This document shows, piece after piece, positions 2,387 to 52,912 of a stretch of DNA of 64,000 nt. Both the position numbers and the translations under genes were made by a program. Source of the stretch: Octopus bimaculoides (lineage: Eukaryota); NCBI RefSeq assembly GCF_001194135.2, contig NC_068989.1:10580111-10644110 (forward strand). Reading direction: 5' to 3'. The notes beneath the pieces were generated by a model. The model was given only the letters and a program-made list of their open reading frames with translations, ran no database searches and was not told the origin of the DNA. Within the stretch, counting starts at the first letter, position 1. Each line of letters opens with the position of its first letter.

Positions 2387-2773
2387 TCAGGGCCATTTTT
2401 TAAAAAAAGCAGCACATTCTTCAATACTGGGTCGCATTTTAGGGTCTGCGTTCCAGCATTTCTGCACCAAAGTTTTGTAATCGTCTGGAGGTTTTTCGGC
2501 CAATTGGAAAGATGGTCGAAGTCCACTCTTTACAGATTCTTCGATTCCTTTCTGGATAAGTGGCTTTATATATGTAACCACATCCATTCCGTACCACATT
2601 TCCCATAGTATAATAGACAAACTATAGATGTCGGCTTTTTTACCATAGATGAATTTCCTTTCAAAGATTTCTGGGGCCATAAAACAAGGACTTCCTGCAA
2701 TTGATCCAGCAATATCACGTTCGAGTTTAGAAAGACCAACATCAATAAGCTTTATGATGTTTTCTTCTGTTAC
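2387..2773 (-). CDS. Exon 13 (terminal): DVG, APE, DIYS, RPS motifs and TGA stop
   Basis: Acceptor TTTTTAG. Reads [16 protein letters not shown]...FFKKWP*. Confidence 0.95.
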   Translation of the reverse strand, partial: VTEENIIKLIDVGLSKLERDIAGSIAGSPCFMAPEIFERKFIYGKKADIYSLSIILWEMWYGMDVVTYIKPLIQKGIEESVKSGLRPSFQLAEKPPDDYKTLVQKCWNADPKMRPSIEECAAFFKKWP

Positions 2774-3179
2774 CTAAAAATTGTGAGAAAGAACATATGT
2801 ATATATATGTAGTAAAGACAAAAAAAAGGTAAGATTCCTTTACAGCAATAATATTATGCTGATACATGTTTCAAACAGTCCAGTAAATTATATCCATTGC
2901 ACATTCAAGTTTGCATGCTTAATTGATCCATCTGTTGATCAATTAATTAACCAAATATACAGAGCTCTTTACTCTTTACTCTTTTACTTGTTTCAGTCAT
3001 TTGACTGTGGCCATGCTGGAGCACCGCCTTTAGTCGAGCAAATCGACCCCAGGACTTATTCTTTGTAAGCATAGTACTTATTCTATCGATCTCTTTTGCC
3101 GAACCGATAAGTTACGGGGATGTAAACACACCAGCATCGGTTGTCAAGCGATGTTGGGGGGACAAACACAGACACACAA

Positions 3180-3232
<53 letters not shown>

Positions 3233-5552
3233 CGACGGTCTTCTTTCAGTTTCCGTCTACCAAATCCACTCACAAGGCTTTGGTTGGCCTGAGGCTATAG
3301 TAGAAGACACTTGCCCAAAGTGCCATGCAGTGGGATTGAACCTGGAACCATGTGGTTGGTAAGCAAGCTACTTACCACACAGCCACTCCTGCGCCTAATA
3401 GCTACTCTGTTTATTGAACATCCTCTTTTTGTGCGATATCCTAAAAACAGATTTTACTCTGAAACCCTAGCTTCTAGAAATGATCCTTAAAAAAGAATAT
3501 AAATATATTAAAATAAAAGAGAACTTACTAAAATGTTTTCCATTTTCAGATCACGATGGACCAAGTTTTTGTGGTGTAAGTATGCAATTGCTTCACACAG
3601 TTGTTGAACGTAATGGCAAAGATGTTTCATCACTTTTTTCTGCTTCTCTGGAATTGAATATTTCCCTGGATTCACTTGGTATTTATCATCGTCTCTTACG
3701 AAGATACTTTTTAGAGTTGTATGACAATATTCTAAAATCATCAACCACTGCAACGAACCATCTTGAAGTTTGCGATAGTTAGAACCATAATAATGAATAA
3801 TATTTTTGTGTTTGATTTCTCTGCAAAAAGATTTGAGATATATTTAGAAACATTGGAACCATAAATATATTCTTATATTCCAAATAAACTTCATTTATTG
3901 AAAATGTAGGGTACTACTTAAATACAGGCGTTACATACAAAACACTTTAAATGTACACTGTGACTGTGTAATGACACCCTAACCGTAACTGTGACCCTAA
4001 AAACTAACCTTCCCCTTTATATCATTACGTAGATGAACCGAGACCACTGTATTTAAGCAGGACCTTTGTATTTAAGTAGTGCCAAATGTAGCCTGCAAAA
4101 TGAAGCAGTAGTGTCACTTAGACAATACACTAGAGTCACAATCTTATTTTATACCCTCTTTCTGAGGGAAGGAAAATGTAGGATATGAAAACGCTTGGGC
4201 TTCTTTTGTAAAGGGAAAAGAATACGTGCGGGAATAAAATCCAGAGGATGGTGTGTATTATGCAGGTCTCACTTATAATATAACTAATAGTATGGATTTA
4301 CTGATGACTAGTCAATGTGAGAAGATGCTTGAGCCTATACTGTACACTGCTAAAAATACAGAGGTGGGTTGAGTAAGCAATTATTATTTTTAGCTACTAA
4401 TTAGAGTTCAAATTCTGTCGCAATTGACCTTGTCATGTATCATTGCATTCCTCCACCTCCTCCTTGTCGTTATTATCATCACTGTTGCCATCATCATCAT
4501 CATCATCATCATCCTCATCATCATTCTTTAAAGTCTACTTTTTAAATATGTAACTCATCTGAAGTTACATAAAAAATTGCATTGCTAGGTTGTAACAATC
4601 TCAAAAATATGCGATTGGAACAATCACAACTTCTTAAAAAAAAAAATTTTTTAAATTGAAGTTTTTGTATAGCTTATCTCTGTCTCTTGGAATATGAACA
4701 GCTTCAAACTCATTCGTCTCAGAGGGCCTGCAATGCTCATCAGCTATACTTTTTTTCACAAGACTCAACAGGTAACCCCCAACCCCACCAACCTGCTACA
4801 CAAATGAAATGCATATGAATGCTTTGATAAAACAGCAGATTTTCTGGGCGTACCTGAGGATACTGTCTTCTAGAAGCGTATCAGATACATTAGCAGTACT
4901 CAGCCTCTCAGACCATGCTTTCACTGCAGCTTTTTTGGCAGTATTATTTATTCTTAGCTGACAGAAATACACAGTTGCAAAACTTCCCGTTCCAAGTGGT
5001 GGTTCACCAGGCATCATTTCAATTTGCTTTAGGTCAATATCAGGAACAAATAATTCTTTCACGTAGAACATGTCGAGGCTTCCTAAATAAAACAATAAAT
5101 AAAAAGGGATGTATTTAAAAATATTTGTTGGGAGTAGTGTCGAATTTTCACCTAGTTGAAGGGAGAAATTGAGAAAACCTGTGAAACCCCCACCCCCTGA
5201 AAATACATCTTCATTTATTACGAGGAGTAAATAAAATCATAACATAAACAATTAAATATAAGGAATAATAATTTCTTAAAGTATGCGTTAATCCCCATGT
5301 GGGTACATGGAGTAAATGAAATCATAACATAAACAATTAAATATAAGAAATAATAATTTCTTAAAGTATGTGTTAATCCCCATGTGGGTACATGGAGTAA
5401 ATAAAATCATAACATAAACAATTAAATATAAGAAATGATAATTTCTTAAAGTATGTGTTAATCCCCATGTACCCAGAGTTTGTGGACACCCTGTATATGG
5501 GGGCACTAAAATCTTTTAAGGGCTTAGGGCCCCTATGGGTCTTAATCTGGCC

Positions 5553-5593
<41 letters not shown>

Positions 5594-8500
5594 TTACATA
5601 CTAACCTTGGAGTCTGTTACATTCTGTGATGAAGTCTGGCAACCGTTCTGAAAAGTTCTGTTCATTCTTCATAAATTCTCGTTCTATATTATCCAATAAA
5701 GCCTGATCAGCTTTGAGGAATTCAGGGAGTCTGGAACCAAGCATGTCAATATCTCTAAAGACTTTGTTGAAAAACTTGGCCAGTGTATTTTGTAGCTTCT
5801 CATGTTCCACAATACTAATGACATAATATTTAGAAACGTCTTGTAATAGTTCTTTGGTTTTAGGTTTTGATGAACCTAATATTGACTTTAATTTTTTTTT
5901 TATATCTTTTTTCTCAAGAGACACATGCCCTAAGGAACTGATATTAAATCCAATAATGGCAGTGTAAGCTTGAGAGTTGTGCTCACCCCCTCTTTTGTAA
6001 GAAAAAAAAGAAAGAGAAAATAGAAAATAGGTGAAAAATTCATAGAAGACATAAGAAACAGTAAATAAATTATACTGTTAAGCACAGTCATATTTAACAT
6101 GTTCGTGTACATCTGGACATTGAAAGACAATGCACTGCGCAAGTTGTCCTCATAGACAACACTTCTTGACCATCAATGATATCACTGGACCATAGAAAAC
6201 ATGTATTTCTGTATTATTATGTTTCATCAGTTATGTATACTGAGCCATCTCTCTTGGCCACTAACAATTGGTTGCTCTTATATTAGAATAGCAAAAGGCA
6301 CAATGGCTGGTGTGTGAAGAGTTACATCAAACTTAAATTAAATTAATTAGCAGTGTACTATAAGTATTTTTAAGTGAAATATATCTGATGAATATTAAAT
6401 ACTTTTCAAGCAAACTCAAAAACCTCTATTTTAGAGGATTGGAGAAATAAGAATTTTGTGATGTTTAAGACGTTTATGACGTTATGAATGTTGCAACTTT
6501 TACTCCCAAGCCCAGAAAGATGTATTTTTCTTTGTAACTATTTAAAATGAACCATTATTATAAAACAGTGACAGGCACCATAGAGCAAAAGGTAAGTTCT
6601 TGGCTAAGCAATTCTATAACCTGATTTTCACATCTGATTGTAACGATTTTTTCTTTTGCTGACATCACTAAAATGCAAACATGGCTATACATAGATGCAA
6701 GCATGGATTTATGGTTAAGAAGCTCGCTTAGCAACCAAGTGGTTTTGGACTCTTACTCACTTCGTGGCACCTATTATAGCTTCTAGCCAACCAATACCTT
6801 GTGAGTGGTTTCTCTAGAAACTGTGTGGAAGCCTGTCGTATATATGTGTGTCTTTGTGTTTGTGCTTGTCCCCACTATCATTTGACACACGGTGTTGGTT
6901 TGTTTAAGTCTTCATAACTCAGCAGATCAGCAAAGTAGACTGATATAATAAGTACCAGACTTAAGGATAAATACTGGGGAAATAAAAATAAAAACCATTG
7001 CACCAGGATTTCTTTCCTCCTATGTAAGCATGTAGAATTTATATCTCTCTTTCCTTAGACAATCCATGTCAACGTATAAGTCTGTGGGATTCTATACTAA
7101 TGGTTGATGTTCAATTTAGCATTTTGCGCCATTGACAATATTGTTTACATCATAGAATCATACTATGGTCCAGTTACACGTACAAAACGGTATGGGTACT
7201 GTGTTTTATCCCTAGGTACTGTGCAAGAGGGGGGGGGGGAAGAATGCAAATCACTGGCTTCTCGTGAATTGCATTTCTGACATCAAATTGTAACATGTAT
7301 AAGGGTTTGATGAAAAAATCATAGGCTGACTATGAAGGAGTGATGCTAGAACTGTGAAATCCTGCATGCATTAGATTCAGTTCTTCTTATTAATAACTGC
7401 ATTCTTTCTTTGCAGGTAAACTGATATTTGACCATTCAAAGAAGACTTGTAACTGAAAATCTACAAAATTTGGTATTGTGGTGTTAACAAGTTCCTGCAG
7501 AAAAAGGGTTTAACTCCCAAATACATTTATGCTGATATGCTTGCTGCATTGGGCAATGACGATCCAGTTTTATAAACAGTGCAAAAGCGGGCAGCTGAAT
7601 TTGGGCGGAGAAGAGAGTCTTGAAGATGACCCGAGATCTCGATGCCCTGAAACTGTCACCACCGAGGAAGACATTGATTGTGTTCACGACATGTCGTCGT
7701 TGGTCTCAATGGATGCTGTGTGTGACTGTAGCTTTGAACTGTTTGATCACCCTCCTTATTCTCCTGATTTGCCCCCCCCCCCACCATTTGATATCAGCTG
7801 TTCTCCAGCATGGAAAAAAATACTTGGCTGGGGACCATTAGCCCAGTGATAATCTGACGACCCGCCTAAGAAGTCAAGGCACACCACTGATACACATGTC
7901 GTATATATATGCCAAATCCCTCACAAGGCTTTGGTCAAGCTGGTGCAATAATAGAAGATATTTATCCAAGGTGCCCCACTTATACAAATACACTCCCAGT
8001 TATTTTTTTAGCAATGAATGTCATTTACCTTTGAAATATATTAGTGATTCCTTTTGGCTTGAAAGGTTTCTTCAAAGACTGCTGCAACTTCCTCGCCTCT
8101 TTGTCTCCAGCTAATGTACCTGTGGGGAAAAAAATGAAGCTTGGTATTGATATCTTCCCTCTGAGTGTCCTATAATCATTCAGAAGTCACTTATTAAACA
8201 ACAAAAATAAAGATAAAGACGTCGAATAAATTAGGATCTCACAAGATCTACAGAGTTAGGAGGAACTTCTCAAGAAGCAAATACCCATCCCTACAAATTA
8301 TTACTGTGTGCTAATATTCCACATGGCTTTTGAACTATTGTAGAATACATTGCATGCCAAACTCCAGTTTCTGGCCTACATACTCACTGTATTTTCTGTT
8401 TTTCCTCATTCAGAAGCTAGTTGGCTTTGTGTTGCAGGCACCCCCAATTCACTCATTTCTGTTCCTCACTAAACTCATATTGCATCCACTGCACAATATG

Positions 8501-11471
8501 TCCAGTCCTCCCTTCACCGGAACAGTTCCTCCACCTCTGGAATTACCTCCACCTCTGGAATTACCTCCATGTCTATGTCTTTTTCTTACCATCAACTTGC
8601 GTTTATTCAAGAGGAACATTGTGTTGATTTCACTTGTCCCTGATAGACTGGGATGGCTATGGGCCCAGCTTCTTTCTTCAGACCAAACAAATAAAATTGC
8701 ATACCAACAGACATGTTTACATTGATATGTAACTCAGAAAATGATATTAGCATCGATTGGGAATGTAGCTCTACTTGGTCTTGAGATTATTATATCTTAT
8801 TTTCAAGAATATGCTATCAGAATATTCTTTTCTACTCTAGGCACAAGGCCCCAAATTTTTTAAGGAGGGGCCTAGTCGATTAGATCAACCTCAATATGCC
8901 TGCTCGTGAAATTAGCATGCAAGTGACTGAGCAATTCACAGACACGTGTACCCCCAACGTATTTCTCAGGGAGACTCAGTGTGACACAGAGTATGACAAG
9001 GCTGGCCCTTTGAAATACAGGTACTACTCATTTTTGCCATCTGAGTAGACTGGAGCAACATGAAATAAAGTATCTTGCTCAAGGGCACAACGCGCCGCCG
9101 GGAATCAAACTCACGATCGTGAGCCGAATGCCCTAACCACTAAGCCACACGCCCTCACACGAATGTTTACAATACATACATAAGGTATATGAGTAAATAA
9201 TCCCAAATAGAATTTTAGACAATTAAGCCAGTGCTGCTGTGAATAATTTAGTTTGCATATCTGTGTTTTTGATGGTTTTTCATTAAGTAAACAGGTCAAT
9301 GTTTACATCTTTCATTCACAACATATTGTGAATAAGAAATTCTGTAACAAAAACTTATATATTACTAAGCCTTAGAAAAAGTTCTTATACAGTTATTTAT
9401 CACAACTAAATTTCGGAGTGTAAGGGTAAATATCCAATCTCTTTCTCTGCTATTCTTAGTTTTATTGCACCCAAATTTACTGTAAGGTACCAACTACATT
9501 TGACACTTTCAAAGTTTGTTTATAAGATGTTGTCACATTCGAAAAGCTATAATTTAGCATTAAAATTAAGAGCATTTTTTTTTATGTCAGGGGCCATTTA
9601 GCATAATGGTAGAACACTCAGCTGGTATCTAAGGGGTACAGGTTCAATTCCCATAGCCACCACCTGGCTACTTTTTTTCCCATTAGGTAAATACCTAATT
9701 TTCTCTGTTGTTCTTTACTGCATTCGAAATTTACTTTCTTGTGTGTGTGTGTGTGTGTGTGTGTTGAGAGAGATAGAGGGAAAGAAAAAGGTAGAGAGAT
9801 AGAGGGAATAATAAAATTTTGAAAGCCTTACTTTCAACATTATATATCTGCATTTCCAAATCGTCAAAACGATCCTTGAATTTTTCCACCATACGAGTGT
9901 TTAAGCTGTTTACAATGTTTTGTTCGATTTCCCAGTCATTGATCAAACTCATGATTTTAGCACCAACCAAATCAATAGTTTGCTGACCAAGTTCCCGCCA
10001 ATGGCTTGCAGTAGAAGATAAAGTAGTAGATGAACTCCATTTAGTAAGTTCTGTTTTTACCTGGACACAGAAGGATGAATTTTATGTTAGCTAAAATATA
10101 TTTGGAAAATTATAAAGTTTTAAAGAGTTACAAAAAAAAAAAAGGACTTGTTCCGAGGTTAAAAAAGCAATTCATTTTATTGAGTGTATTTGTGCAAATT
10201 ATATTGAGTGGAAGAATTTTCTACTAAATAGCATATTCAAAATCACAACAAAGTTTTTGAGGAATGCAAATCTTGGAAATACAATTCTAACAACTCAGCA
10301 TTCTTATAATGCTCTTGATATTCATAATCAAGTATTTCTGATGAGAATATTTTCCAGATTTAAACTTTGTCTTCAGATTGATGTATAATTTATTAGTCAA
10401 TGACAAACAAGGACGAAACAATATGTTGGTGTTTATACTTGTGTGGCAAGTAACTTGATCTGAAACTATGTGTTGGCTTGATCTGACATCAGCGTCAGTG
10501 AACAGGTTGCAGTGGGTCGACAAATATTTTTGTGCCTTTTGAAGTATATTAAAAGTGATTGTAACAACTTTTGTGTGAAGTAAGATGGCTAATGCAGCTC
10601 TTCCACCATGTAGCAATTAAGCAGTTCATTGATTTAATATTGTATTACCAACTGTGTTTGTGGAATCAACTGGCAAAGAAAGGATTAGTTTTAAACTTTG
10701 AAAAAACTGGTTTAGATACAATATTAGTAAGCAAGCTTTTTTGTCATGTGAATGGATTAACAATATATGTAACAGAGAGCTGTGTATTTATCACTATCAG
10801 AAATTATATATCTAGGATCAAGCCATGTAATAAAACTAAAAAAAAGATTTGGTCTCTTATCACTACGAGATAATAGATTGTTTATTCAGTTGGGATTCTG
10901 TTCAACTCATAGATCTTATCCCGAGTTGATTGAAATGTATCATTGAAACTGAACTGTACTCTATTTGTGTCACTTTATACAATGATGGGTGAGTCTGTGA
11001 GTTGAATGATAATACCAGGTAGTATCATTACTAGCTTATACTGGTTTCAATTAATTCCAAGATCGACTTATCTGCTTTCTGTTGTCTATGGATATTAGAA
11101 TCATTGCACCAGTAGCTTTTGTAAACCATAACACTTTATTGTGGTTGAAATCTACCTAGAGCAGTAGTTCCCAAACTTTTTCATGCTCCTGCCCCCTTGG
11201 CACCCAGGACACATTCCTAGCACCCCCTCACCCTCCTTACCACATATATAGACCATTTTTGCAGCAAATTCAAAACAACTGGAGTTCACAAATAAAACTT
11301 AAACCTAATTTACCTACTGATATATTTTCTAACATCTATCACCCCATTTTGGCCACCCCACTTTTATCATACCACTTTTCTTCAATGCCGCCTAGATCTT
11401 TCCACTGCTTCCAAGTGGGCAGTACTACCCACTTTGGGAACCACTGATCTAGAGTTGTGTGATAATTGTCT

Positions 11472-11504
<33 letters not shown>

Positions 11505-14500
11505 TTTAATTCCATATTTTCCCACGAAATTAGTAGAAATAGACCTGACCTGAATGTTTGCAACAGAGTGAACTCTTTGAAGGGACACATGGGCCAGCTG
11601 GTGATGTTAAATGAAACAACTCCCTTATAAACCTAGGCCCACATTTAAGCATAAAGAATATGAAAGTGCTATGTGCTAGCAAGTAGTTTCAAATGTTGCC
11701 TCATGGTTTTAAACCAATCAAAATCAACTTGCTTAAATTTTGAGAATACTGATTTCAAATTTTGGCACAAGGCCAGCAAATTTGGGGGTGGGGTCTAGTT
11801 GATTACATCGATTCCAAATTTCAGCTGTTACTTACTTTATTGACCCCGAGGGGATGAATGGCAAAGTCAACCTCGGTGGAATTTGAACTCAGAACATGAA
11901 GACAGACGAAATACCTCTAAGCATTTTGCCCGGTGTGCTAACTATTCTGCTTGCTTGCTGCCTTGCATTTTTGAGAATATTAGTACTAGTTTCTTCATAT
12001 CAAAAGAAACAAGAGCACCCAGAGAGTGCAAACCTCCACCAAGGCAACACCAACGTCCTCTCAACGATTAGCTAGAAACGATTTTTAAAATGAGAATATC
12101 TGAAATAAACTCGACTGCTCTCACAAACGAGAATACTAAAAATGAACCCGACTGCTCTCAAAAGTTAAGTAAAAGAACAGGAAAAATAACCCAGAATCCT
12201 TGTCCGGTACTGGATTAATCCCAAAATCTAATCAGTTTGCGCTAGTCATGAGGCCAAACATCCCTGAAAGCTCCATCTGAATCCATCCAGTAGTTCCTGA
12301 GATATCTTGTCCATTGACAAACAAACATGACTGAAAGCAACACCTCCACCTTCGTTAAGGCAGAGGTAATAATGTAGGAAGTTTTATTGTTGTTGATTCT
12401 AATGAGAAACCTGAAAATACATGCTTTTATACATAGACTTAGTACTTTAATCAGAAATTAGAAAAGAAGTCTTGTTACCGCTTCACTTTTCAGATACGAA
12501 ATAAATTCAGATTTGATTATGGCCAGCTCCTGTTGTATTTGACTTCGCATCTCATTAATAAAAGCGATAGATTTTTTTTCTAATGTTGAAATCTGTCTTC
12601 GCAATGTAGAATATAGTTCAGATTTGTTGACTAAATTACGATTTCCAGCATGAGTTTTAACTTTTAATGAATATACTGATCTCTTCAAAAGACTGCTCAG
12701 CCATCTAAAGCAAACAGTAACAATAATAGTCATTACAACAATGATCATTGTGCCACATTAAATATAATTATTGCAACAACAATAAAAAAAAAAAAAACTA
12801 TGTTAACGACTGCAAATATCTGTAAATTCTTTTATTCTTTTACTGCCTTCAGACATTGGAGTGCGATTGTCTAGGGGCATCATATTTCAAAGATTTTTAG
12901 TTCAATATGTCGCCTCCAGTTTGACTAAGTTTATATTTTAGGTCAATAAGGGTTGCATGACAATCTACGATTTACAATAGTACTGGGATCGATTTGTTTA
13001 ACTAAAGCCTTTTAAGGCATTGCCCCATCATTGCTCCTGTCCAATAACTCAAACCAGTAAAAGTAGAAATTAATATATNNNNNNNNNNNNNNNNNNNNNN
13101 NNNNNNNNNNNNNNNNNNNNNNNNNNNNNNNNNNNNNNNNNNNNNNNNNNNNNNNNNNNNNNNNNNNNNNNNNNNNNNNNNNNNNNNNNNNNNNNNNNNN
13201 NNNNNNNNNNNNNNNNNNNNNNNNNNNNNNNNNNNNNNNNNNNNNNNNNNNNNNNNNNNNNNNNNNNNNNNNNNNNNNNNNNNNNNNNNNNNNNNNNNNN
13301 NNNNNNNNNNNNNNNNNNNNNNNNNNNNNNNNNNNNNNNNNNNNNNNNNNNNNNNNNNNNNNNNNNNNNNNNNNNNNNNNNNNNNNNNNNNNNNNNNNNN
13401 NNNNNNNNNNNNNNNNNNNNNNNNNNNNNNNNNNNNNNNNNNNNNNNNNNNNNNNNNNNNNNNNNNNNNNNNNNNNNNNNNNNNNNNNNNNNNNNNNNNN
13501 NNNNNNNNNNNNNNNNNNNNNNNNNNNNNNNNNNNNNNNNNNNNNNNNNNNNNNNNNNNNNNNNNNNNNNNNNNNNNNNNNNNNNNNNNNNNNNNNNNNN
13601 NNNNNNNNNNNNNNNNNNNNNNNNNNNNNNNNNNNNNNNNNNNNNNNNNNNNNNNNNNNNNNNNNNNNNNNNNNNNNNNNNNNNNNNNNNNNNNNNNNNN
13701 NNNNNNNNNNNNNNNNNNNNNNNNNNNNNNNNNNNNNNNNNNNNNNNNNNNNNNNNNNNNNNNNNNNNNNNNNNNNNNNNNNNNNNNNNNNNNNNNNNNN
13801 NNNNNNNNNNNNNNNNNNNNNNNNNNNNNNNNNNNNNNNNNNNNNNNNNNNNNNNNNNNNNNNNNNNNNNNNNNNNNNNNNNNNNNNNNNNNNNNNNNNN
13901 NNNNNCACAAACACATACATATATATATATATATATACATATATACGACGGGCTTCTTTTCAGTTTCCGTCTACCAAATCCACTCACAAGGCTTTGGTCG
14001 GCCCGAGACTATAGTAGAAGACACTTGCCCAAGGTGCCACACAGTGGGAATGAACCCGGAACCATGCGGTTGGTAAGCAAGCTACTTACCACACAGCCAC
14101 TCCTGCACCTAAAGTAATGTTCACCTCAGCGGGATTTGAACTCAGAATGTAGAGAGTCGAAAGAATTACCCCCAAAACATTTTGTCAGACTATCTAACGA
14201 GTCTGTCAGCTTATGTATAAATTGAATAAAGTTAAAACATAATTTTGAATAACCTAAAATGAAAACAAAGCGACAAAGGCTTAACATCGATCCAAACTCT
14301 CTTTGAATATCATTTCACATCCTTTCGGCAACATTTTTTTAATCACCAAGTGATGGATAAGGAAAAAAGTATTAAAAATCAAAAAATACAGTAAAAAAAA
14401 AAGAATAAAAGAACATATGTATATAATATTTACTTGTAACTTCTAAGGATTTTGTTTTTCATTGTAGCTGGAATTAATGTTTTCATGGCTGTATAGAAAA

Positions 14501-28938: not shown

Positions 28939-29059
28939 TAATGCAATACACTCCCAACAGCAGAAAAGAACACACAATGCTGGGCACACGTCAGCAACAC
29001 AGGTGTAGCAGGTGATGCAATAGATTTTACCAAATGTTGAACAGTTATATAATAATAAC

Positions 29060-29099
<40 letters not shown>

Positions 29100-32000: not shown

Positions 32001-34027
32001 TAGTAGTGGTGACGTTTCTTTAGTTGCTCTCTACTGAAGACTAAAAAACAAAAAGGGACCCTCAGGCGGTCGGTGTTTTCATATGTGTGACTCATAGCCC
32101 TATTTTCAATCACTAAGTACACTTGGATGCTGTTTTTGGAATATTATCTCCCTCTATGGTTTATTACCACAATAAGAACATACAGGCCGAAATTAACATT
32201 TTTACTTCGCATGCTCTACGATTTCATCACCTGCCCGTCGAGGTAAGGTATTGTATAATGTAACGGTACAATAAATATTTTCTTTAAAACTTCAATCACT
32301 GTTCTTTCATCTTTACATAATGGCAATCAACGAAGACCCAATCCTTACAAACTGATTACGACTCCAACATTCCATCCTACTGTGTATCAACTATCGTTTC
32401 CATTCTATTGTTTACCATATTATTGTTTACAAACGTAAACTTTCGTTTCCATACCATTGTTTACCTAAATTAATTTCAACCGATACAAAATAATCTTCAT
32501 CGTTGCAACTGGTGACCAACCGTTACAACTGGTAACCTTTAACCGTTACATATATATTCAATTACAAATTAAAAACAGCGCCAGTGTTGTAAACATTATT
32601 GACCGCACATACTTAATGTATGTGTTGTGCTTGCTAGCCTGTTCGCTGCGGCACACCGCTTTGATGATTATTCCAGCACAGCACTGGGTGTTAAAGCACC
32701 TGAAAATTATAGACAGGCGAAACAACTCATCTCTAATCCTATCCAGCAGTAATGGATGCCGATATTTCGCCATTTTTGTGGCTTATAAACACTACGTACC
32801 TGAATCGAAACAGAGATAAACTGAATCACTAGTCTATGACTCTAAACAAATAGCGTAAGAACTATTTACTGGTATTCCACGGCGATGAATGCGTAAGATT
32901 AAATCTAATTACGAATTTTAAAAAAATAAGCAGCGTTAGTGTTGTAAACATTATCGACCGCACATACTCAAAGTATGCGTTGTCTCACTTGACTATGAGT
33001 TTCAGGTCTTTTAACATCCAGTGCTATGAATGAATCGTCCATAAAGGGCTGTATGTAGCAAGGTACGTACAGTATGAGTGGTTGATGACGTTTACAACAC
33101 TAGCGATGCTTTTAATTCATAATTGAATTTAATCTTACGTTACATTGTCGTGGTGTACCAGCAAATGGTTCTTACACTATTTGTATATAGTTAAAGCTTG
33201 GCGATTCAGTTTGCCCTCGGTTCCATTCAGGTATGTAATATTGATAAACCCCAAAAAGGGCGAAGTATCGGTCTCCACACACACATTTATATATGCACAC
33301 ACACACATCCACACCCAAGCCGCGTAGTTTAAAAGTTCGCTTCGCAATCATGTACTTTCTCTGATTCGATTTCTCTGCTCTACAAAAAGTTTCTTGTTAT
33401 TAGCCTCGCTTTGACTCTCACGCTGTGAGAATTTTTTTGTCAGGAAGCGTGAGAAAGCTCGTTGTATATGCATGTGTGTATATGTGTATTTTGTACTCCA
33501 GCATAAACCGGTGTATCAAGTGGCGTCTCTATTGTTAGAAGTTAATTAAGTCATGTGTAAAGTAAATTACAAGACGGAAAGTTCGAGAAACCATACAGCA
33601 GTAGTAGTATGGAGGAATGTATTGTAATAACGCGTCGATGCGTCCACCATTTATTAGTGATACTCTACTACGCTTTGTGGATAATACCTTCGCACCACTT
33701 AGGCGACAACCTTCCAAATCACGTGTCGGTTTGGGTAGTCTTGCTGGTGAGGGTGTTACGAGGTCGGAGTATAGATTCTACCCCCAACTACTTTCCGTCG
33801 CCTTTTACGACACACAGAGGAAAAGTTGGATCTGTTCTTTGACATACCGTTTTCCATACAGCACTAGAATAGCGTGAAATGAAGTGTTTTGCTCAAAAAC
33901 ACAAAACGCCGCCCAGTCGAACCCACGATCGTCAGATCGTGGGTTCAACACCTTAACCACTAGGTCGTGCGCCTTCATGTGATCAACTAAAACCTTTAAT
34001 GACGTATTACAGCATAGCAGCATTCCA

Positions 34028-34103
<76 letters not shown>

Positions 34104-34114
34104 GGTTAGCTAGC

Positions 34115-34160
<46 letters not shown>

Positions 34161-35512
34161 NNNNNNNNNNNNNNNNNNNNNNNNNNNNNNNNNNNNNNNN
34201 NNNNNNNNNNNNNNNNNNNNNNNNNNNNNNNNNNNNNNNNNNNNNNNNNNNNNNNNNNNNNNNNNNNNNNNNNNNNNNNNNNNNNNNNNNNNNNNNNNNN
34301 NNNNNNNNNNNNNNNNNNNNNNNNNNNNNNNNNNNNNNNNNNNNNNNNNNNNNNNNNNNNNNNNNNNNNNNNNNNNNNNNNNNNNNNNNNNNNNNNNNNN
34401 NNNNNNNNNNNNNNNNNNNNNNNNNNNNNNNNNNNNNNNNNNNNNNNNNNNNNNNNNNNNNNNNNNNNNNNNNNNNNNNNNNNNNNNNNNNNNNNNNNNN
34501 NNNNNNNNNNNNNNNNNNNNNNNNNNNNNNNNNNNNNNNNNNNNNNNNNNNNNNNNNNNNNNNNNNNNNNNNNNNNNNNNNNNNNNNNNNNNNNNNNNNN
34601 NNNNNNNNNNNNNNNNNNNNNNNNNNNNNNNNNNNNNNNNNNNNNNNNNNNNNNNNNNNNNNNNNNNNNNNNNNNNNNNNNNNNNNNNNNNNNNNNNNNN
34701 NNNNNNNNNNNNNNNNNNNNNNNNNNNNNNNNNNNNNNNNNNNNNNNNNNNNNNNNNNNNNNNNNNNNNNNNNNNNNNNNNNNNNNNNNNNNNNNNNNNN
34801 NNNNNNNNNNNNNNNNNNNNNNNNNNNNNNNNNNNNNNNNNNNNNNNNNNNNNNNNNNNNNNNNNNNNNNNNNNNNNNNNNNNNNNNNNNNNNNNNNNNN
34901 NNNNNNNNNNNNNNNNNNNNNNNNNNNNNNNNNNNNNNNNNNNNNNNNNNNNNNNNNNNNNNNNNNNNNNNNNNNNNNNNNNNNNNNNNNNNNNNNNNNN
35001 NNNNNNNNNNNNNNNNNNNNNNNNNNNNNNNNNNNNNNNNNNNNNNNNNNNNNATATATATATATATATATATATATAGTAAATCCCCCAAAAGAAGAAT
35101 AACAAACACGCAAGGACGTGGTACATGTAAAGTATTAGCAGACGCTCAGGGAAGGAAAGAATGATGGTTCGACGTTTCGAGCAGACGCTCTTTTTCAGAA
35201 ACAGAGGAAAGTCCAATAGAAAAGAAGACGGAAGAAGAAAAGCGCCAACGATTCACATGGGGTTACATTTTGAAATGTATATATACATATTATAATATAT
35301 TATTAATAATATCAGGAAATCAATATTAGAAAATTCATCAGAAAGATATATACAAGTGTATCAATATTGGAAAATTCATCATATATAAATATACACCCCA
35401 ACACATATCAATTAAATAATAATATAAATAATACATATGTGCATGTATATATCACCTTCCCGAGCGTCCTATCTCCGTCTTTTGTTTTCCTGTAAATTTC
35501 AACTATATCTAT

Positions 35513-35580
<68 letters not shown>

Positions 35581-36277
35581 TTATCTATTTATCTTTCTAT
35601 CTATCTATCTATCTCTCTATCTATCTCTCTATCTCTCTATCTATTTATCTATCTATCTCTCTATATATATGCATATATGGGTACAGGACACCACCAACAG
35701 TAAATAACATGAAATACGAAAGCAAATGAGTTAAATACGCAAATAACGAGAGAAAAAAAAATGGAAAACAGGAGAAATAATACAAAGATTACAAAGAACA
35801 ACCCTTCATCAGTTGTCGGCTGTCTATCTTCTCCCCATTTCGAGCAATCAACGATTTGCGTATTTAGCTCATTTGTTTTCGTAATTCAGGTTTTTACTGT
35901 TGGTGACGTCCTGTACTCATATATGCATACATACATACATANNNNNNNNNNNNNNNNNNNNNNNNNNNNNNNNNNNNNNNNNNNNNNNNNNNNNNNNNNN
36001 NNNNNNNNNNNNNNNNNNNNNNNNNNNNNNNNNNNNNNNNNNNNNNNNNNNNNNNNNNNNNNNNNNNNNNNNNNNNNNNNNNNNNNNNNNNNNNNNNNNN
36101 NNNNNNNNNNNNNNNNNNNNNNNNNNNNNNNNNNNNNNNNNNNNNNNNNNNNNNNNNNNNNNNNNNNNNNNNNNNNNNNNNNNNNNNNNNNNNATATACA
36201 CACACACGCACACACACACACACACATATATATATATACATATACATATATAGATATATAAGTACGCATACACATGC

Positions 36278-36312
<35 letters not shown>

Positions 36313-36700
36313 CACACACGCACACACACACGAAGATGTGCTGAAAAGTTCCTGACTTTGGGTAAAAGAAAATATAGGAAGATCAGTTAATTATGATTTT
36401 ATTTATATTTATCTCTCAGAGTGACACACTTATTGCAGTTTTTCTAAACACTGTAAAAAAAAAAAAACTCGGAAGGTCGGGGCCTCCAGCCAGGTTTTTT
36501 GCACCTCTATATATGTACTTTGCACCCCTCCTATATATGTACTTTAGTCTACCTTTGCTATTCGAGTACTATTTTTTTTTCACATTCTTTCGTTGTAACT
36601 ATGTCCTTACTTCTGTGTGAGTGTATATATGCATTTGTATGTATGTATGTATGTATGTATGTATGTATGTATGTATGTATGTATGTATATACAAATGCGC

Positions 36701-36750
<50 letters not shown>

Positions 36751-38445
36751 GCACACACATGTATATACATATGCATATATACTCATGTGTGCAGAGGAGT
36801 CTAATGACATGGACATACCAGGCTGTTGTCAAGGTTTCACATGAGTTTAGTGGTCCTGATGCTAAACTATATATATGCACAGTCATGGCTGTGTGGTTAC
36901 GGAGATAGCTTTACAACCATGTGGTTTCAGGTTCGGTCCCAATGCCTCGTAAGTGAATTTGGTAAATAGAAATTGTGTGAGAGCTCGTCGTACACACATG
37001 CACACACCCACACATACAGACACACGCACATACATACATACAAATGCATATACACACTCATATACACGCACACACACGCAAGTAAGGACATAGTTACAGC
37101 GAAAGAATGTGAAAAGAAATAGTACTCGAATACCAAAAGAAGACTAAAACACTATATTACTGAAGCTGAAAATATCTCTAGAAACTGTTACTCTTGTGTG
37201 TGTGTGTGTGTGTGTGTATGTGTGTGTGTGTATGTGTGTGTATGTGTGTGTGTGATGCGTGCGTGCACGTCTGAATGTATGTATGTATGCGCATATGCTT
37301 GTATGTACACATCGATATAAATCCGTGTGTCGAGCACCTGCCCTTTTTGTTAAAACGTAATTTAGCCTTTTGGTTAATAATCCATTCTACTAAAGGCACA
37401 AGGCCTGAAATTTAGTGGGAAGGGCCAGTCGATTACATCGATCTCAATANNNNNNNNNNNNNNNNNNNNNNNNNNNNNNNNNNNNNNNNNNNNNNNNNNN
37501 NNNNNNNNNNNNNNNNNNNNNNNNNNNNNNNNNNNNNNNNNNNNNNNNNNNNNNNNNNNNNNNNNNNNNNNNNNNNNNNNNNNNNNNNNNNNNNNNNNNN
37601 NNNNNNNNNNNNNNNNNNNNNNNNNNNNNNNNNNNNNNNNNNNNNNNNNNNNNNNNNNNNNNNNNNNNNNNNNNNNNNNNNNNNNNNNNNNNNNNNNNNN
37701 NNNNNNNNNNNNNNNNNNNNNNNNNNNNNNNNNNNNNNNNNNNNNNNNNNNNNNNNNNNNNNNNNNNNNNNNNNNNNNNNNNNNNNNNNNNNNNNNNNNN
37801 NNNNNNNNNNNNNNNNNNNNNNNNNNNNNNNNNNNNNNNNNNNNNNNNNNNNNNNNNNNNNNNNNNNNNNNNNNNNNNNNNNNNNNNNNNNNNNNNNNNN
37901 NNNNNNNNNNNNNNNNNNNNNNNNNNNNNNNNNNNNNNNNNNNNNNNNNNNNNNNNNNNNNNNNNNNNNNNNNNNNNNNNNNNNNNNNNNNNNNNNNNNN
38001 NNNNNNNNNNNNNNNNNNNNNNNNNNNNNNNNNNNNNNNNNNNNNNNTATATATATGTGTGTGTGTGTGTTTGTGTGTCTGTGTTAGTCCCACCACCATC
38101 GCTTGACATCCGATGCTGGTGTGTTTACGTCCCCGTAACTTAGCGGTTCGGCAAAACGGACCGATAGAATAAGTACTAGGCTTTCAAAGAATAAGTCCTG
38201 GGGTCGATTTGCTCGACTAAAGGCGGTGCTCCAGCATGGCCGCTGTCAAATGACTGAAACAAGTAAAAGAGAGTAAGTTCATTTAGTCTACTTACAGGAT
38301 TATTTATGTAAAAGCGAAGCCTTTCTTTGGCATTTTCTAAAGAAGTCAGTCCACCAAGACTCAAACCAAGATCTGTTAGCATCGTAATTGCTTCCCGAAG
38401 ATCCTTTAGGGAATCAATTTCTTTCAGTTTCGGTAACGTCGCCAT
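2387..38445 (-). CDS. DSTYK-like: 13-exon gene, 984 aa: dynamin-like GTPase + helical region + protein kinase (DSTYK-like family)
   Basis: CDS join (minus): 38296-38445, 23312-23531, 20769-21061, 19221-19361, 17036-17236, 14434-14543, 12479-12704, 9832-10060, 8029-8119, 5606-5991, 4854-5082, 3529-3820, 2387-2773. Total 2955 nt. Every intron is GT..AG and every junction phase matches. The activation segment [28 protein letters not shown] resembles DSTYK (xxxDLGFCK...GSIVGTPIHMAPE, from recall). Orthology not tested. Confidence 0.88.
2965..3395 (-). mobile_element. SINE family B, full length (tRNA head, internal (TA)n(CA)n, AGTAAAAG-repeat tail)
   Basis: Near-identical to the copies at 14847-15235, 18655-19101 and 52476-52912. 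Box-like GTGGCTGTGTGG and GGTTCAATCCC. Confidence 0.9.
3529..3820 (-). CDS. Exon 12: kinase hinge and catalytic loop (HRDLKMEN)
   Basis: Acceptor TTTTGCAG, donor GTAAGT, 292 nt. Confidence 0.95.
4854..5082 (-). CDS. Exon 11: kinase N-lobe ([14 protein letters not shown], alphaC Glu)
   Basis: Acceptor TATTTAG, donor GTACG. Gly-rich loop and catalytic Lys present. Confidence 0.94.
5224..5492. repeat. 85-bp tandem repeat x3 next to a Tc1/mariner-like TIR end
   Basis: Units start at 5224, 5309 and 5394. They end at GTGGACACCCTGTATA, the reverse complement of TATACAGGGTGTCCAC. Confidence 0.8.
5606..5991 (-). CDS. Exon 10 ([10 protein letters not shown]...CNRLQ), helical region before the kinase
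   Basis: Pyrimidine tract followed by ACAAAAG acceptor (the only phase-compatible AG), donor GTTAGT, 386 nt. Confidence 0.85.
7410..7860 (+). mobile_element. Internally deleted mariner remnant
   Basis: 5' HTH part ([15 protein letters not shown]) is joined directly to the 3' part ([13 protein letters not shown]). Same family as 50470-51493. Confidence 0.8.
8029..8119 (-). CDS. Exon 9 ([30 protein letters not shown])
   Basis: Not in the ORF track. Strong acceptor TTTTTTTCCCCACAG, donor GTAAAT. Phases 1/2 bridge exons 8 and 10. Confidence 0.82.
8895..9158 (-). mobile_element. SINE family D (tRNA head, CCCTTGAGCAAG middle, 3' module shared with family C)
   Basis: Head GTGGCTTAGTGGTTAGGGC...GAGTTTGATTCC. 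The 3' part aligns with 19970-20100. Confidence 0.75.
9586..9670 (+). other. tRNA-like sequence (probable pseudogene or short SINE head)
   Basis: TAGCATAATGGTA A-box, GGTTCAATTCC B-box and a partial cloverleaf with 5/7 acceptor pairs. Followed by the hairpin TAGCCA-CCACC-TGGCTA and a T7 run. Confidence 0.45.
9832..10060 (-). CDS. Exon 8 ([10 protein letters not shown]...MQIYNVE)
   Basis: Acceptor TGTCCAG, donor GTAAGG, 229 nt. Confidence 0.88.
11162..11446. mobile_element. hAT (Charlie/Buster-type) MITE
   Basis: TIRs CAGTAGTTCCCAAA / TTTGGGAACCACTG. 8-bp TSD ACCTAGAG/ATCTAGAG. Confidence 0.85.
11755..11965 (-). mobile_element. SINE family A copy
   Basis: Same module as 1339-2310. Further copies or fragments at about 22860-23230, 23885-24030, 37385-37449 and 51960-52165 (-), and 40290-40505, 53435-53570 and 62270-62470 (+). 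Confidence 0.85.
12010..12372 (-). mobile_element. Helentron-type non-autonomous element (HINE/DINE-1-like)
   Basis: On the minus strand it starts TTACCTCTGCC and ends CTTGGTGGAGGT + hairpin GCACTCTCTGGGTGC. Confidence 0.65.
12479..12704 (-). CDS. Exon 7 ([10 protein letters not shown]...YLKSEA), helical/coiled-coil-like
   Basis: Acceptor CTTTAG, donor GTAAC, 226 nt. Confidence 0.88.
13907..14109 (-). mobile_element. SINE family B, 5' half (remainder in the N gap)
   Basis: Matches 3200-3395. Confidence 0.88.
14434..14543 (-). CDS. Exon 6 ([36 protein letters not shown])
   Basis: Not in the ORF track. Acceptor TGTATAG, donor GTAAAT. The phase-2 end AA joins A of exon 7 (Lys). Confidence 0.85.
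14847..15235 (+). mobile_element. SINE family B, full length
   Basis: GGCGCAGGAGTGGCTGTGTGG...GACTGAAACAAGTAAATGAGTAA. Confidence 0.9.
15434..15978 (+). mobile_element. Helentron-type non-autonomous element (HINE/DINE-1-like)
   Basis: Subterminal IRs ACCTCCGCCAAG (15437-15448) / CTTGGCGGAGGT (15940-15951). The 5' motif is repeated internally near 15860. Degenerate 3' hairpin and T-rich flanks. Confidence 0.7.
17036..17236 (-). CDS. Exon 5: G4 region (TIFVSNKWE)
   Basis: Acceptor ATCACAG, donor GTAAGT, 201 nt, phase 0/0. Confidence 0.92.
18655..19101 (-). mobile_element. SINE family B, full length
   Basis: Homologous to 2965-3395. Contains a 10-N gap with a duplicated overlap. Confidence 0.9.
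19221..19361 (-). CDS. Exon 4: G3 motif ([10 protein letters not shown]...FIYVINA)
   Basis: Acceptor CAACACAG, donor GTAATG, 141 nt, phase 0/0. DTPG is typical of dynamin-like GTPases. Confidence 0.93.
19762..20154 (+). mobile_element. SINE family C, full length with TSD
   Basis: tRNA head TGGCCCAGTGGTTAGAGC...GGTTTCGATT, (AAC)n tail, 10-bp TSD TAGTACATGT (19752-19761 / 20155-20164). Confidence 0.9.
20769..21061 (-). CDS. Exon 3: P-loop G1 (GETGSGKS) and G2 region ([10 protein letters not shown])
   Basis: Acceptor CCTTTAG, donor GTAAC. Split codon G|GA restores [17 protein letters not shown]. Confidence 0.93.
22040..22320 (-). mobile_element. R4/Dong-clade (RLE) LINE 3' fragment abutting (AAT)n
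   Basis: [33 protein letters not shown]...TAHILRK. Confidence 0.8.
23312..23531 (-). CDS. Exon 2 ([15 protein letters not shown]...RECLIMLAG)
   Basis: Acceptor TTTTACAG, donor GTGAG, 220 nt. Ends in the beta strand leading into the P-loop. Confidence 0.9.
24844..25226. repeat. Foldback element, about 155-bp arms (24844-24999 / 25072-25226)
   Basis: The arms are reverse complements with few mismatches. Each carries a degenerate hammerhead-like core. Confidence 0.9.
25278..25430. repeat. Near-perfect hairpin, about 65-bp arms
   Basis: ...TATAATTATATTAAGG.GCAAG.GCGAAAACGACCT / AGGTCGTTTTCGC.CTTGC..CCTTAATATAATTATA... Confidence 0.88.
25813..25897 (-). ncRNA. Putative minimal type-I hammerhead ribozyme
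   Basis: GCAG-CUGAAGA-(UUGC..long loop..GCAU)-GAA-ACGAUCGU-A-CUGC. Stem I GCAG/CUGC, palindromic stem III, GUA triplet. Stem II closing pair is non-canonical. Confidence 0.55.
25999..26083 (+). ncRNA. Putative minimal hammerhead ribozyme (mirror copy)
   Basis: GCAG-CUGAGGA-...-GAA-ACGAACGU-A-CUGC, with one mismatch in the palindrome. Confidence 0.5.
27729..27804 (-). ncRNA. Putative minimal type-I hammerhead ribozyme
   Basis: UCGUA-CUGAAGA-(AUCA..UGGC)-GAA-ACCUGGU-C-UACGA. 5-bp stem I, GUC triplet, partly decayed stem II. Confidence 0.55.
28030..28760 (+). mobile_element. R4/Dong-clade RLE LINE 3' fragment (CCHC knuckle + PD-D/ExK endonuclease)
   Basis: [59 protein letters not shown]. Frameshifted. 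Confidence 0.88.
29099..29700 (+). mobile_element. 5'-truncated R4/Dong-like LINE directly after (AAT)n
   Basis: [48 protein letters not shown]. Confidence 0.85.
30290..30960 (-). mobile_element. Degenerate L1/Tx1-clade LINE ORF2 remnant (end of the APE domain)
   Basis: Minus-strand translation [10 protein letters not shown]...[10 protein letters not shown]...[10 protein letters not shown]. Stops and frameshifts present. Confidence 0.6.
32780..33245. repeat. Old degenerate inverted repeat, about 190-bp arms
   Basis: 32780-32975 aligns to the reverse complement of 33065-33245 at roughly 75-80% by eye. A partial third copy lies at 32570-32620. Confidence 0.75.
35167..35202 (-). ncRNA. Minimal hammerhead-like motif, probably inactive (G8->A)
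   Basis: GUUU-CUGAAAA-A-GAGC-GUCU-GCUC-GAA-ACGU-C-GAAC. Confidence 0.5.
35678..35920. repeat. Foldback element, about 70-bp arms
   Basis: ATGGGTACAGGACACCACCAACAGTAAA...ATACGCAAAT / ATTTGCGTATT...TTTACTGTTGGTGACGTCCTGTACTCAT. Confidence 0.8.
36330..36535 (-). mobile_element. Mariner-derived MITE (degenerate)
   Basis: CGAAGATGTGCTGAAAAGTTCCTGACTTTGGGTAAAAGAAAAT is the reverse complement of the right end of 57982-58203. Confidence 0.7.
36550..37135. repeat. Local inverted duplication, about 100-bp arms
   Basis: ATTCGAGTACTATT..TTCACATTCTTTCG.TGTAACTATGTCCTTACTT (36561-) versus its reverse complement at 37080-37132. Confidence 0.75.
38048..38276 (+). mobile_element. SINE family B, 3' half, ending about 20 bp from the exon-1 donor
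   Basis: Matches 15050-15235. Confidence 0.88.
38296..38445 (-). CDS. Exon 1 (start codon): [50 protein letters not shown]
   Basis: ATG in a strong context (AAGATGG). 150 nt ending at a GTAAGT donor in phase 0, which reads in frame into exon 2 ([11 protein letters not shown]). It lies 14.8 kb from exon 2 across several N-gaps. Confidence 0.72.

Positions 38446-52475: not shown

Positions 52476-52912
<437 letters not shown>

Follow-up and report, generated by a model that had tools for sequence, protein, structure and literature searches.

In mitofusins and BDLP, binding of GTP leads the GTPase domains to dimerise across the nucleotide pocket and the helical bundles to swing, and the C-terminal helix of proteins of this type returns to the bundle proximal to the GTPase domain. 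Mitofusins, Fzo1 and the bacterial dynamin-like proteins (DLPs) carry no protein kinase. ROCO proteins (LRRK1/2) hold a GTPase and a kinase on one polypeptide, together with a COR dimerisation domain next to the Ras-like Roc GTPase, and the output of their kinase is considered to depend on nucleotide state and on dimerisation. DSTYK, on the other hand, is a kinase of which two thirds has no assigned fold or function; reviews describe it as poorly understood and not as a genuine receptor-interacting protein (RIP) kinase (PMC9573974, PMC10492769), it has been connected with malformations of the human urinary tract and with spastic paraplegia SPG23 and, in zebrafish, with scoliosis and the fusion of vacuoles, and Bagwell et al. 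reported that pre-vacuolar membranes require Dstyk kinase activity in order to fuse with the notochord vacuole of zebrafish, the effector not being named (PMC7012607). Here we describe LOC106883634, a gene of Octopus bimaculoides lying in a window of 64,000 nucleotides, by which we mean the whole stretch of DNA analysed (assembly GCA_001194135.2, chromosome record CM046609.1; 36% G+C, 12 runs of N). Open reading frames (ORFs) on the minus strand of this window, between 2387 and 38445, encode fragments recognisable as dynamin-type GTPase and as protein kinase, which an original prediction had joined into a dynamin/mitofusin-like GTPase fused to an intact kinase. Our best explanation, which we regard as probable on the basis of sequence comparison, structural models and analogy, is that one gene encodes one 984-residue protein made of N-terminal helices, a complete BDLP/mitofusin-type GTPase and a complete kinase, that GTP would drive the switching of the kinase, and that the protein belongs to a family paralogous to DSTYK.

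Results

Gene structure and predicted fold

Mapping of the NCBI protein "uncharacterized protein LOC106883634 [Octopus bimaculoides]" (P0001) onto the window gave 13 minus-strand coding exons with consistent phases, every acceptor being AG and every donor GT (Table 1). Their spliced translation of 984 amino acids is identical to P0001 residue for residue, confirming the length originally proposed, and the coding sequence, which starts at 38445 and stops at 2387, spans the same 36,059 bases as the NCBI record. The P-loop codon, Gly124, is split over the exon 2/3 junction. The protein is laid out as N-terminal helices (residues 1-115), a dynamin-like protein (116-690) and a kinase (705-980), and every motif listed in the original prediction, from G1-G4 through the helical stretch to the kinase motifs, was recovered where it had been placed.

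In the N-terminal two thirds, Pfam Dynamin_N is matched at residues 120-296 with 78 bits (cut-off 27), and the GTPase motifs are G1 GETGSGKS (124-131), G2 Thr151 within CCTAC, G3 DTPG (228-231) and G4 NKWE (295-298). The solved sequences closest to residues 1-683 are those of Mitofusin-1 (E value 2e-12), Mitofusin-2, Nostoc BDLP (1e-7), yeast Fzo1 and IniA; G1, G2 and G3 align to the P-loop, Thr109 and DSPG of Mitofusin-1, and NKWE stands opposite its NRWD. G1-G4 of mitofusin/Fzo1, BDLP, DynA, IniA and SynDLP likewise align with the octopus protein, including the mitofusin-type N-[KR]-W-D at G4, with the differences that octopus G4 ends in Glu and that the identity of mitofusin/Fzo1 and the bacterial DLPs to the octopus protein is 15-20%. 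Bacterial DynA-type proteins are matched by the family at 99.3% in hhalign (E 1e-20).

The full-length protein (with a 21-sequence family alignment) and its N-terminal 683 residues alone were modelled with AlphaFold2. The full-length model, with a mean predicted local distance difference test score (pLDDT) of 81 and a predicted template-modelling score of 0.63, comprises an alpha/beta domain (118-330), very long helices (346-693) and a kinase fold, and the N-terminal model has a pLDDT of 79. When the full model was compared with PDB using Foldseek, BDLP came first (2j69_A, E 4e-16, 707 columns; 2j69/2j68 together E 4e-16/3e-15 over about 710-740 columns), followed by MFN1 (target template-modelling (TM) score 0.61), Fzo1 and SynDLP, the target TM-scores of MFN1, Fzo1 and MFN2 lying at 0.5-0.6. 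The N-terminal model returned BDLP, MFN1, Fzo1, MFN2, IniA, the Campylobacter DLP pair and SynDLP, and then Drp1, OPA1, EHD and classical dynamin. A large GTPase domain with two helical bundles, neck and trunk, is found in the AlphaFold2 models, so that the N-terminal 680 or so residues share the topology of BDLP; the root-mean-square deviation of more than 40 Å from BDLP is, as modelled, a different opening of the bundles on the same topology. Sequence and models together support the assignment of the N-terminal two thirds to a complete protein of the BDLP/mitofusin ("fusion DLP") type, with the GTPase domain at 116-340 and the two bundles at 346-693, as had been predicted for the GTPase.

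The N-terminal helices include a short motif encoded by exon 1 (residues 10-48; I..L.DL..A......GI...G......K.RL), which is also present in hemichordate, coral and amphioxus members of the family described below. It looks similar to a SAP/HeH helix-extended-helix motif, but this reading was rejected, Pfam giving no more than a sub-threshold SAP match in one relative (13.7 bits) and a weak Ish1 match in another.

The C-terminal part matches Pfam Pkinase at residues 711-976 with 146.6 bits (cut-off 31.7) and contains GTGSF (714-718), Lys737, the alpha-C Glu754, HRDLKMEN (847-854), DVG (867-869) and APE (889-891), supporting the view that the octopus kinase keeps every catalytic residue and bearing out the earlier description of it as intact. 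HRDLKxxN is a catalytic loop of the Ser/Thr type, and judged by its residues the domain is a catalytically complete kinase of the tyrosine kinase-like/tyrosine kinase (TKL/TK)-like kind with a Ser/Thr-type loop. In the Foldseek comparison the kinase superimposes on RET and FGFR2 with a target TM-score of about 0.76. In phmmer comparisons the kinase sequence scored 90 bits with a JAK structure, 80 with EGFR, 78 with Nek7 and 74-85 with DSTYK sequences. A specifically DSTYK-like kinase was ruled out on these scores (74-85 bits against 90 for JAK), and a word-index search with the octopus kinase domain alone returned no DSTYK; by sequence, the kinase domain taken alone proves no special relationship to DSTYK.

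That the two enzymes belong to one polypeptide is indicated from several sides. The last stalk helix of the AlphaFold2 model (629-693) runs unbroken over the exon 10/11 junction and leads directly to the kinase N-lobe. The Argonauta orthologue aligns with the octopus protein end to end (67%, 1-984 to 1-985), and a transcript-derived relative, P0004, aligns in one segment (57%, 8-983 to 17-996). The source of P0004, the Logan contig SRR6517992_53240 of 3,495 bases, has a single uninterrupted ORF of 1000 amino acids with untranslated flanks and is a transcript-like molecule carrying GTPase and kinase together in one frame. Seven gaps of N fall within the gene, all of them intronic and none closer than 249 bases to an exon edge, and there seems to be no exon hidden in them, because the Argonauta orthologue and P0004 align without extra segments at the gap junctions. 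It is against this evidence that an annotation artefact has to be weighed, either a merger of neighbouring dynamin-like and kinase genes or a gap-hidden exon that breaks the frame. Such an artefact is suggested by the facts that the octopus evidence itself is a computed gene model and that intron 1 is 14.8 kb long with five gaps; given the uninterrupted ORF of the contig, the continuous stalk helix, the intronic position of every gap, the orthologues without an extra segment and the recurrence of the same colinear architecture across many phyla (see below), we consider it largely refuted and highly improbable.

Where its gene model is complete, the O. vulgaris orthologue shares about 91% identity with the octopus protein. 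Its entry, P0002 (782 amino acids, "Dual specificity kinase shkA"), is a model without the segments matching residues 337-434 and 595-682; these omissions are probably an annotation error, and the Dictyostelium-derived name is misleading.

Distribution of the family

Exhaustive searching with HMMER, using a profile built on the N-terminal 683 residues, turned up 389 representatives (clusters at 50% identity) at E<=1e-30, mostly of about 1000 amino acids. The colinear GTPase-kinase architecture is present in 111 of the 172 family sequences fetched, from many phyla, which upholds the fusion claimed in the original prediction. Members of about 1000 amino acids with the two Pfam domains are found in cephalopods (Octopus and Argonauta), bivalves (Pinctada, Mercenaria, Mytilus, Mizuhopecten, Dreissena, Mya, Potamilus, Pecten, Saccostrea and Ylistrum), gastropods (Biomphalaria, Bulinus and Nucella), nemerteans (Lineus and Tubulanus), hemichordates (Glandiceps and Ptychodera), amphioxus and the corals Stylophora and Pocillopora, with one amoebozoan member in a Luapelamoeba transcriptome. 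There was no vertebrate, arthropod or nematode among the named members, most matches carrying no name, and those that are named appear as "uncharacterized" or under inconsistent automatic names (Fer-like, MAP3K12, shkA, STE20-like, CSK-like).

In a motif census of the 97 family members of at least 850 amino acids, G1, G2 and G3 are intact together in 90, the exceptions looking mostly like truncated gene models. The kinase Lys, the HRD Asp, the catalytic Asn and the DFG Asp, on the other hand, occur together in 50 of the 97; the remaining long members have HME or SFE in place of HRD and GAC in place of DFG, and are pseudokinases with perfect GTPase motifs (e.g. P0016-P0027 and many of P0225-P0371). 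Because 90 of the 97 keep G1-G3 and only 50 keep the kinase residues, it is the GTPase, as far as motifs can tell, that forms the family's conserved core, the kinase being a module that can be dispensed with or converted.

Several members depart from the common layout. Kinase-less versions of about 610-650 amino acids exist, for example in Ylistrum (P0321) and Saccostrea (P0333), and two amphioxus proteins, P0290 (Branchiostoma, 1790 amino acids) and P0308 (B. belcheri, 1194 amino acids), as annotated continue past the kinase into a C-terminal Trypsin_2 peptidase domain (43.7 and 57.2 bits in Pfam) and may be either genuine three-domain proteins or merged gene models. The amoebozoan protein P0371 (Luapelamoeba hula, 1155 amino acids) has a Dynamin_N match of 74 bits and a hydrophobic paddle, and its kinase-like domain (97 bits) is without HRD; either the fusion predates animals, or the sequence reflects contamination or gene transfer. 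The original prediction had suggested, as a possibility, that the octopus protein comes from an invertebrate-expanded immune or stress family. The family is indeed large and rich in invertebrates, and its expansion in bivalves and amphioxus and the trypsin-like additions in amphioxus are only suggestive as regards an immune or stress role.

Comparison with DSTYK

DSTYK resembles the octopus protein in overall layout, with about 100 residues of helices, an alpha/beta region at about 105-300, about 350 residues of helices and a C-terminal kinase at about 650-900 (705-980 in the octopus protein). Neither has DFG itself, DSTYK reading DLG and the octopus protein DVG, and their activation segments are alike (GSIxG[ST]PxxMAPE). 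This shared layout and D-[LV]-G motif are what would be expected if LOC106883634 were simply the octopus DSTYK, a reading to which we give very little chance. The octopus kinase is 28% identical to that of DSTYK, whereas true DSTYK orthologues of molluscs and arthropods reach 65-77% kinase identity to human. Octopus sinensis has a separate DSTYK-like protein (P0197), with 45% identity to human DSTYK against 25% to the octopus protein, and DSTYK proteins stand beside this family also in Mytilus (P0154) and Mya (P0134). Because of the low kinase identity and the separate gene in Octopus sinensis, the sequences place the LOC106883634 protein outside DSTYK orthology; its family is probably a paralogue of DSTYK.

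The N-terminal parts were compared as profiles. The human reference was the exact database entry (NP_056190.1, Q6XUX3), and further DSTYK N-termini were rebuilt from the genome of a mite (Halotydeus), from two Logan contigs and from one ENA contig, their exon joins being approximate; a Rotaria locus (L003) without the N-terminal part and a further locus (L007) without usable upstream exons were left out. The family N-terminus aligned with four DSTYK N-termini in hhalign at 94.1% (E 1.2e-7, score 69.6, 149 columns), the match spanning family positions 110-270 and human DSTYK 104-266, which runs from strand 1 with the P-loop, past G3, to the end of the strand that follows. As controls, the reversed DSTYK alignment scored 27.4 (E 0.033) and eight column shuffles scored 14-23 (E 0.1-0.8). 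Addition of a fifth DSTYK sequence gave 92% (E 6e-7), the family profile against human DSTYK alone gave a weak match (30%, E 5.5e-4), and a greedier alignment of family and DSTYK remained colinear until the kinase begins. Independently of the family, the DSTYK N-terminal profile matched bacterial DynA-type proteins in the first of their GTPase domains (67%, E 5e-5). HMMER alone misses the link, with about 10 bits for DSTYK against the family profile and nothing found in PDB by the DSTYK N-terminal profile, and Pfam recognises only the kinase in human DSTYK.

At the position of G1, where the family has GETGSGKS, the DSTYK sequences read GQDCNVKC, GSKSWAKA, GQNCNAKA, GTNPLAKA and GNRPNVKA; at that of G3 (DTPG in the family) they read VAPC, VAPS, VPPD and LPAY; and the G4 strand, FVSNKWE in the octopus protein, is FFFKVPK. 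G1-G4 are all lost in the DSTYK sequences, with no G4 remaining, and the alignments suggest that the DSTYK N-terminus is a pseudo-GTPase descended from the same dynamin-like domain. The original description, a "DSTYK-like architecture with a retained P-loop", is thus apt in the sense of homology between the N-terminal domains. As a side observation, the ENA contig ctg317743 (L004; a metagenome contig of 10,482 bases, 60% G+C) carries the same DSTYK gene twice, head to head and inverted, with an identical protein, which looks like a palindromic assembly artefact.

Other sequence features of the window

A dispersed repeat of about 120 bases, resembling a short interspersed nuclear element (SINE), is present in copies 93-94% identical and in weaker ones (Table 1). 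One copy begins 25 bases past the donor of exon 1, which is why the raw ORF extends beyond this exon, and another adjoins the 10-base gap of intron 4. Microsatellites of the (CA)n/(TG)n and (TA)n types, which appear as HTHTHT, CVCVCV and YIYIYI pseudo-ORFs, border most runs of N; the assembly gaps probably mark unresolved simple repeats and not missing unique sequence. Four short ORFs look, from the appearance of their peptides, like remnants of mariner/Tc1-type transposases and a retroelement fragment; Pfam found nothing significant in these transposon-like ORFs, with one sub-threshold HTH_32 match in the first of those listed.

Table 1. Positions of the coding exons of LOC106883634, of the assembly gaps within the gene and of other features of the window
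Feature	Position	Strand	Residues	Remarks
Exon 1	38296..38445	-	1-50	ATG at 38445; short N-terminal helical motif; exact P0001 match, GT donor
Exon 2	23312..23531	-	51-123 and first base of Gly124	N-terminal helices into GTPase strand beta-1; donor phase 1
Exon 3	20769..21061	-	124-221	G1 GETGSGKS (21039-21061 and base 23312), G2 Thr151 (20979-20981); Pfam Dynamin_N, Mitofusin-1 alignment
Exon 4	19221..19361	-	222-268	G3 DTPG (19332-19343)
Exon 5	17036..17236	-	269-335	G4 NKWE (17147-17158); end of GTPase domain
Exon 6	14434..14543	-	336-372	Start of long stalk helix (model helix 346-443); located by P0001 mapping, AG/GT sites
Exon 7	12479..12704	-	372-447	Stalk helix
Exon 8	9832..10060	-	448-524	Helical bundle
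Exon 9	8029..8119	-	524-554	Start of loop replacing BDLP paddle/mitofusin membrane hairpin; Lys-rich, non-hydrophobic
Exon 10	5606..5991	-	554-683	Remainder of paddle-equivalent loop, then returning stalk helices
Exon 11	4854..5082	-	683-759	End of last stalk helix into kinase N-lobe; GTGSF (4976-4993), Lys737 (4919-4921); Pfam Pkinase
Exon 12	3529..3820	-	759-856	HRDLKMEN (3535-3558)
Exon 13	2387..2773	-	857-984 and stop	DVG (2735-2743), APE (2669-2677), kinase C-lobe; stop 2387-2389
Gap, intron 1	26649-27391
Gap, intron 1	28818-28890
Gap, intron 1	34161-35053
Gap, intron 1	35942-36193
Gap, intron 1	37450-38047
Gap, intron 4	18768-18777			10 bases
Gap, intron 6	13079-13905
SINE-like copy	38150-38271			93-94% identical
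SINE-like copy	2979-3100			93-94% identical
SINE-like copy	18651-18767			93-94% identical
SINE-like copy	15144-15229			93-94% identical
SINE-like copy	61943-62039			Weaker copy
SINE-like copy	52474-52522			Weaker copy
Microsatellite	26481-26648			Example of gap flank
Microsatellite	27392-27460			Example of gap flank
Microsatellite	34090-34160			Example of gap flank
Microsatellite	35900-35941			Example of gap flank
Microsatellite	36194-36330			Example of gap flank
Short ORF	50537-50848	+		Sub-threshold HTH_32 match
Short ORF	51145-51390	+
Short ORF	7529-7849	+		Intron 9
Short ORF	28045-28338	+		Intron 1

Discussion

By analogy with mitofusin and BDLP, GTP binding would make the GTPase domains dimerise head to head and the helical bundles rearrange. 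The kinase being attached to the helix that returns to the GTPase-proximal bundle, two kinase domains would be brought together, or released; juxtaposition would follow from GTPase dimerisation because the C-terminal helix returns beside the GTPase domain. Juxtaposed kinases may then trans-autophosphorylate, and phosphorylation of substrates would be switched on. The kinase would serve as an output or regulatory module, one that has turned into a pseudokinase in about half of the members.

Several observations weigh against this explanation or parts of it. The direction of coupling, in which the GTPase controls the kinase, is drawn from analogy, and the kinase is generic by score, being no closer to DSTYK than to JAK, EGFR and Nek7. 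The significant alignment with DSTYK comprises the GTPase-domain core only, the colinear extension into the stalk not being significant alone. The octopus G4 is NKWE, and at least 80 of the 97 relatives have Asp at the position of this Glu; NKWD is read in 49 of the 97 and NRWD in 19. Finally, neither a hydrophobic paddle nor a transmembrane hairpin is present in the octopus protein, and the 19-residue Kyte-Doolittle hydropathy of the paddle loop peaks at 0.86.

With respect to G4, NKWE is found in Octopus bimaculoides and O. vulgaris, and N[KR]WD in Argonauta, in the cephalopod-like P0004 and P0005 and in most of the family; from these comparisons, Asp to Glu is a lineage-specific change at the residue of guanine specificity, and it could weaken guanine binding. 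Taken further, the octopus GTPase domain might be a scaffold, nucleotide-binding or nucleotide-free, and the protein a constitutive dimeric kinase. We regard this as improbable. The restriction of NKWE to the two Octopus species among the cephalopods examined would agree with it, as would the precedent of DSTYK that GTPase function can be lost in a lineage; yet G1, G2 and G3 are perfect, the replacement of Asp by Glu is conservative, and the two Octopus species share about 91% identity in the GTPase domain, all of which speaks against it.

At the position of the BDLP paddle and the mitofusin anchor, many family members have a Pro-containing hydrophobic hairpin, which the octopus protein does not. 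Hydropathy there is at least 1.6 in 35 of 90 long relatives, with a strongly hydrophobic, Pro-containing stretch such as ILVPLALVASVVLVPAAGF, whereas the corresponding octopus loop is Lys-rich and has a pLDDT below 50 over 539-562. Because the hydrophobic paddle is missing, the octopus protein is probably cytosolic or only peripherally membrane-bound, and the change at G4 together with the loss of the paddle suggests a soluble or peripheral protein of possibly altered nucleotide affinity. The membrane association expected by the original prediction is therefore weakened for the octopus protein, even if the paddle persists in those 35 relatives.

The paddle also bears on whether control might run in the opposite direction, with the kinase regulating the assembly of the dynamin-like machine, for example by phosphorylation of the Lys/Ser-rich paddle-equivalent loop or the stalk, and with membrane tethering or remodelling, and not signalling, as the main output. 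This is in our view unlikely, though less so than the scaffold just described. It would account for a GTPase that is invariably conserved in a family half of which tolerates a dead kinase, for the hydrophobic paddle kept in many relatives, and for an octopus loop (539-600) rich in Ser, Thr and Lys. The octopus member, however, is without a paddle and still has a fully intact kinase, suggesting that kinase output matters, and in DSTYK it is the kinase that is the essential part (PMC7012607). Control of the kinase by the GTPase remains our preferred explanation.

It is of note that the databases already list the gene product, uncharacterised but with both Pfam domains, so that the pairing of domains was not hidden. 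What is of value here is the recognition of the family and of the way in which live and dead enzymes alternate, together with the link to DSTYK. No paper on the family or on a dynamin-like fold of DSTYK came up when the literature was searched for DSTYK together with dynamin, GTPase or AlphaFold, or for Dynamin_N together with Pkinase, most subscription journals lying outside the search. By its motifs, the octopus protein belongs to the dynamin superfamily, with a kinase as its output, and just as much to the DSTYK superfamily, as a member whose GTPase is live. Like ROCO proteins it joins GTPase and kinase on one polypeptide, but with a dynamin-type GTPase and a helical stalk instead of the Ras-like Roc and COR; Pfam found no Roc or COR domain in the octopus protein, and its domain composition marks the family as an independent invention of GTPase-kinase coupling relative to ROCO.

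A broader proposal, tentative and to our minds a little short of an even chance, is that the family is the surviving, enzymatically complete lineage of DSTYK, that a fusion GTPase-kinase ancestor existed before animals, that the DSTYK N-terminus is a pseudo-GTPase relic of it, and that GTP-driven dimerisation gates the kinase in intact members. The ancestor would be placed before animals because one amoebozoan transcript has the same layout. The zebrafish Dstyk vacuole-fusion phenotype would fit, by analogy, ancestry in a dynamin-like protein of the fusion type. The octopus family bridges mitofusin/BDLP and the DSTYK N-terminus, turning the "unknown N-terminus" of DSTYK into the testable hypothesis of a dead dynamin domain of the fusion type. 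It also offers a natural experiment in coupling, with both enzymes live in some members, a live GTPase beside a dead kinase in about half of the family and, in DSTYK, a dead GTPase beside an active kinase, as judged by motifs. If true, the proposal would explain why vertebrate Dstyk is needed in a membrane fusion step and in the biogenesis of vacuoles and lysosome-related organelles, and the family would represent a second, independent solution to the coupling of GTPase and kinase besides ROCO/LRRK2.

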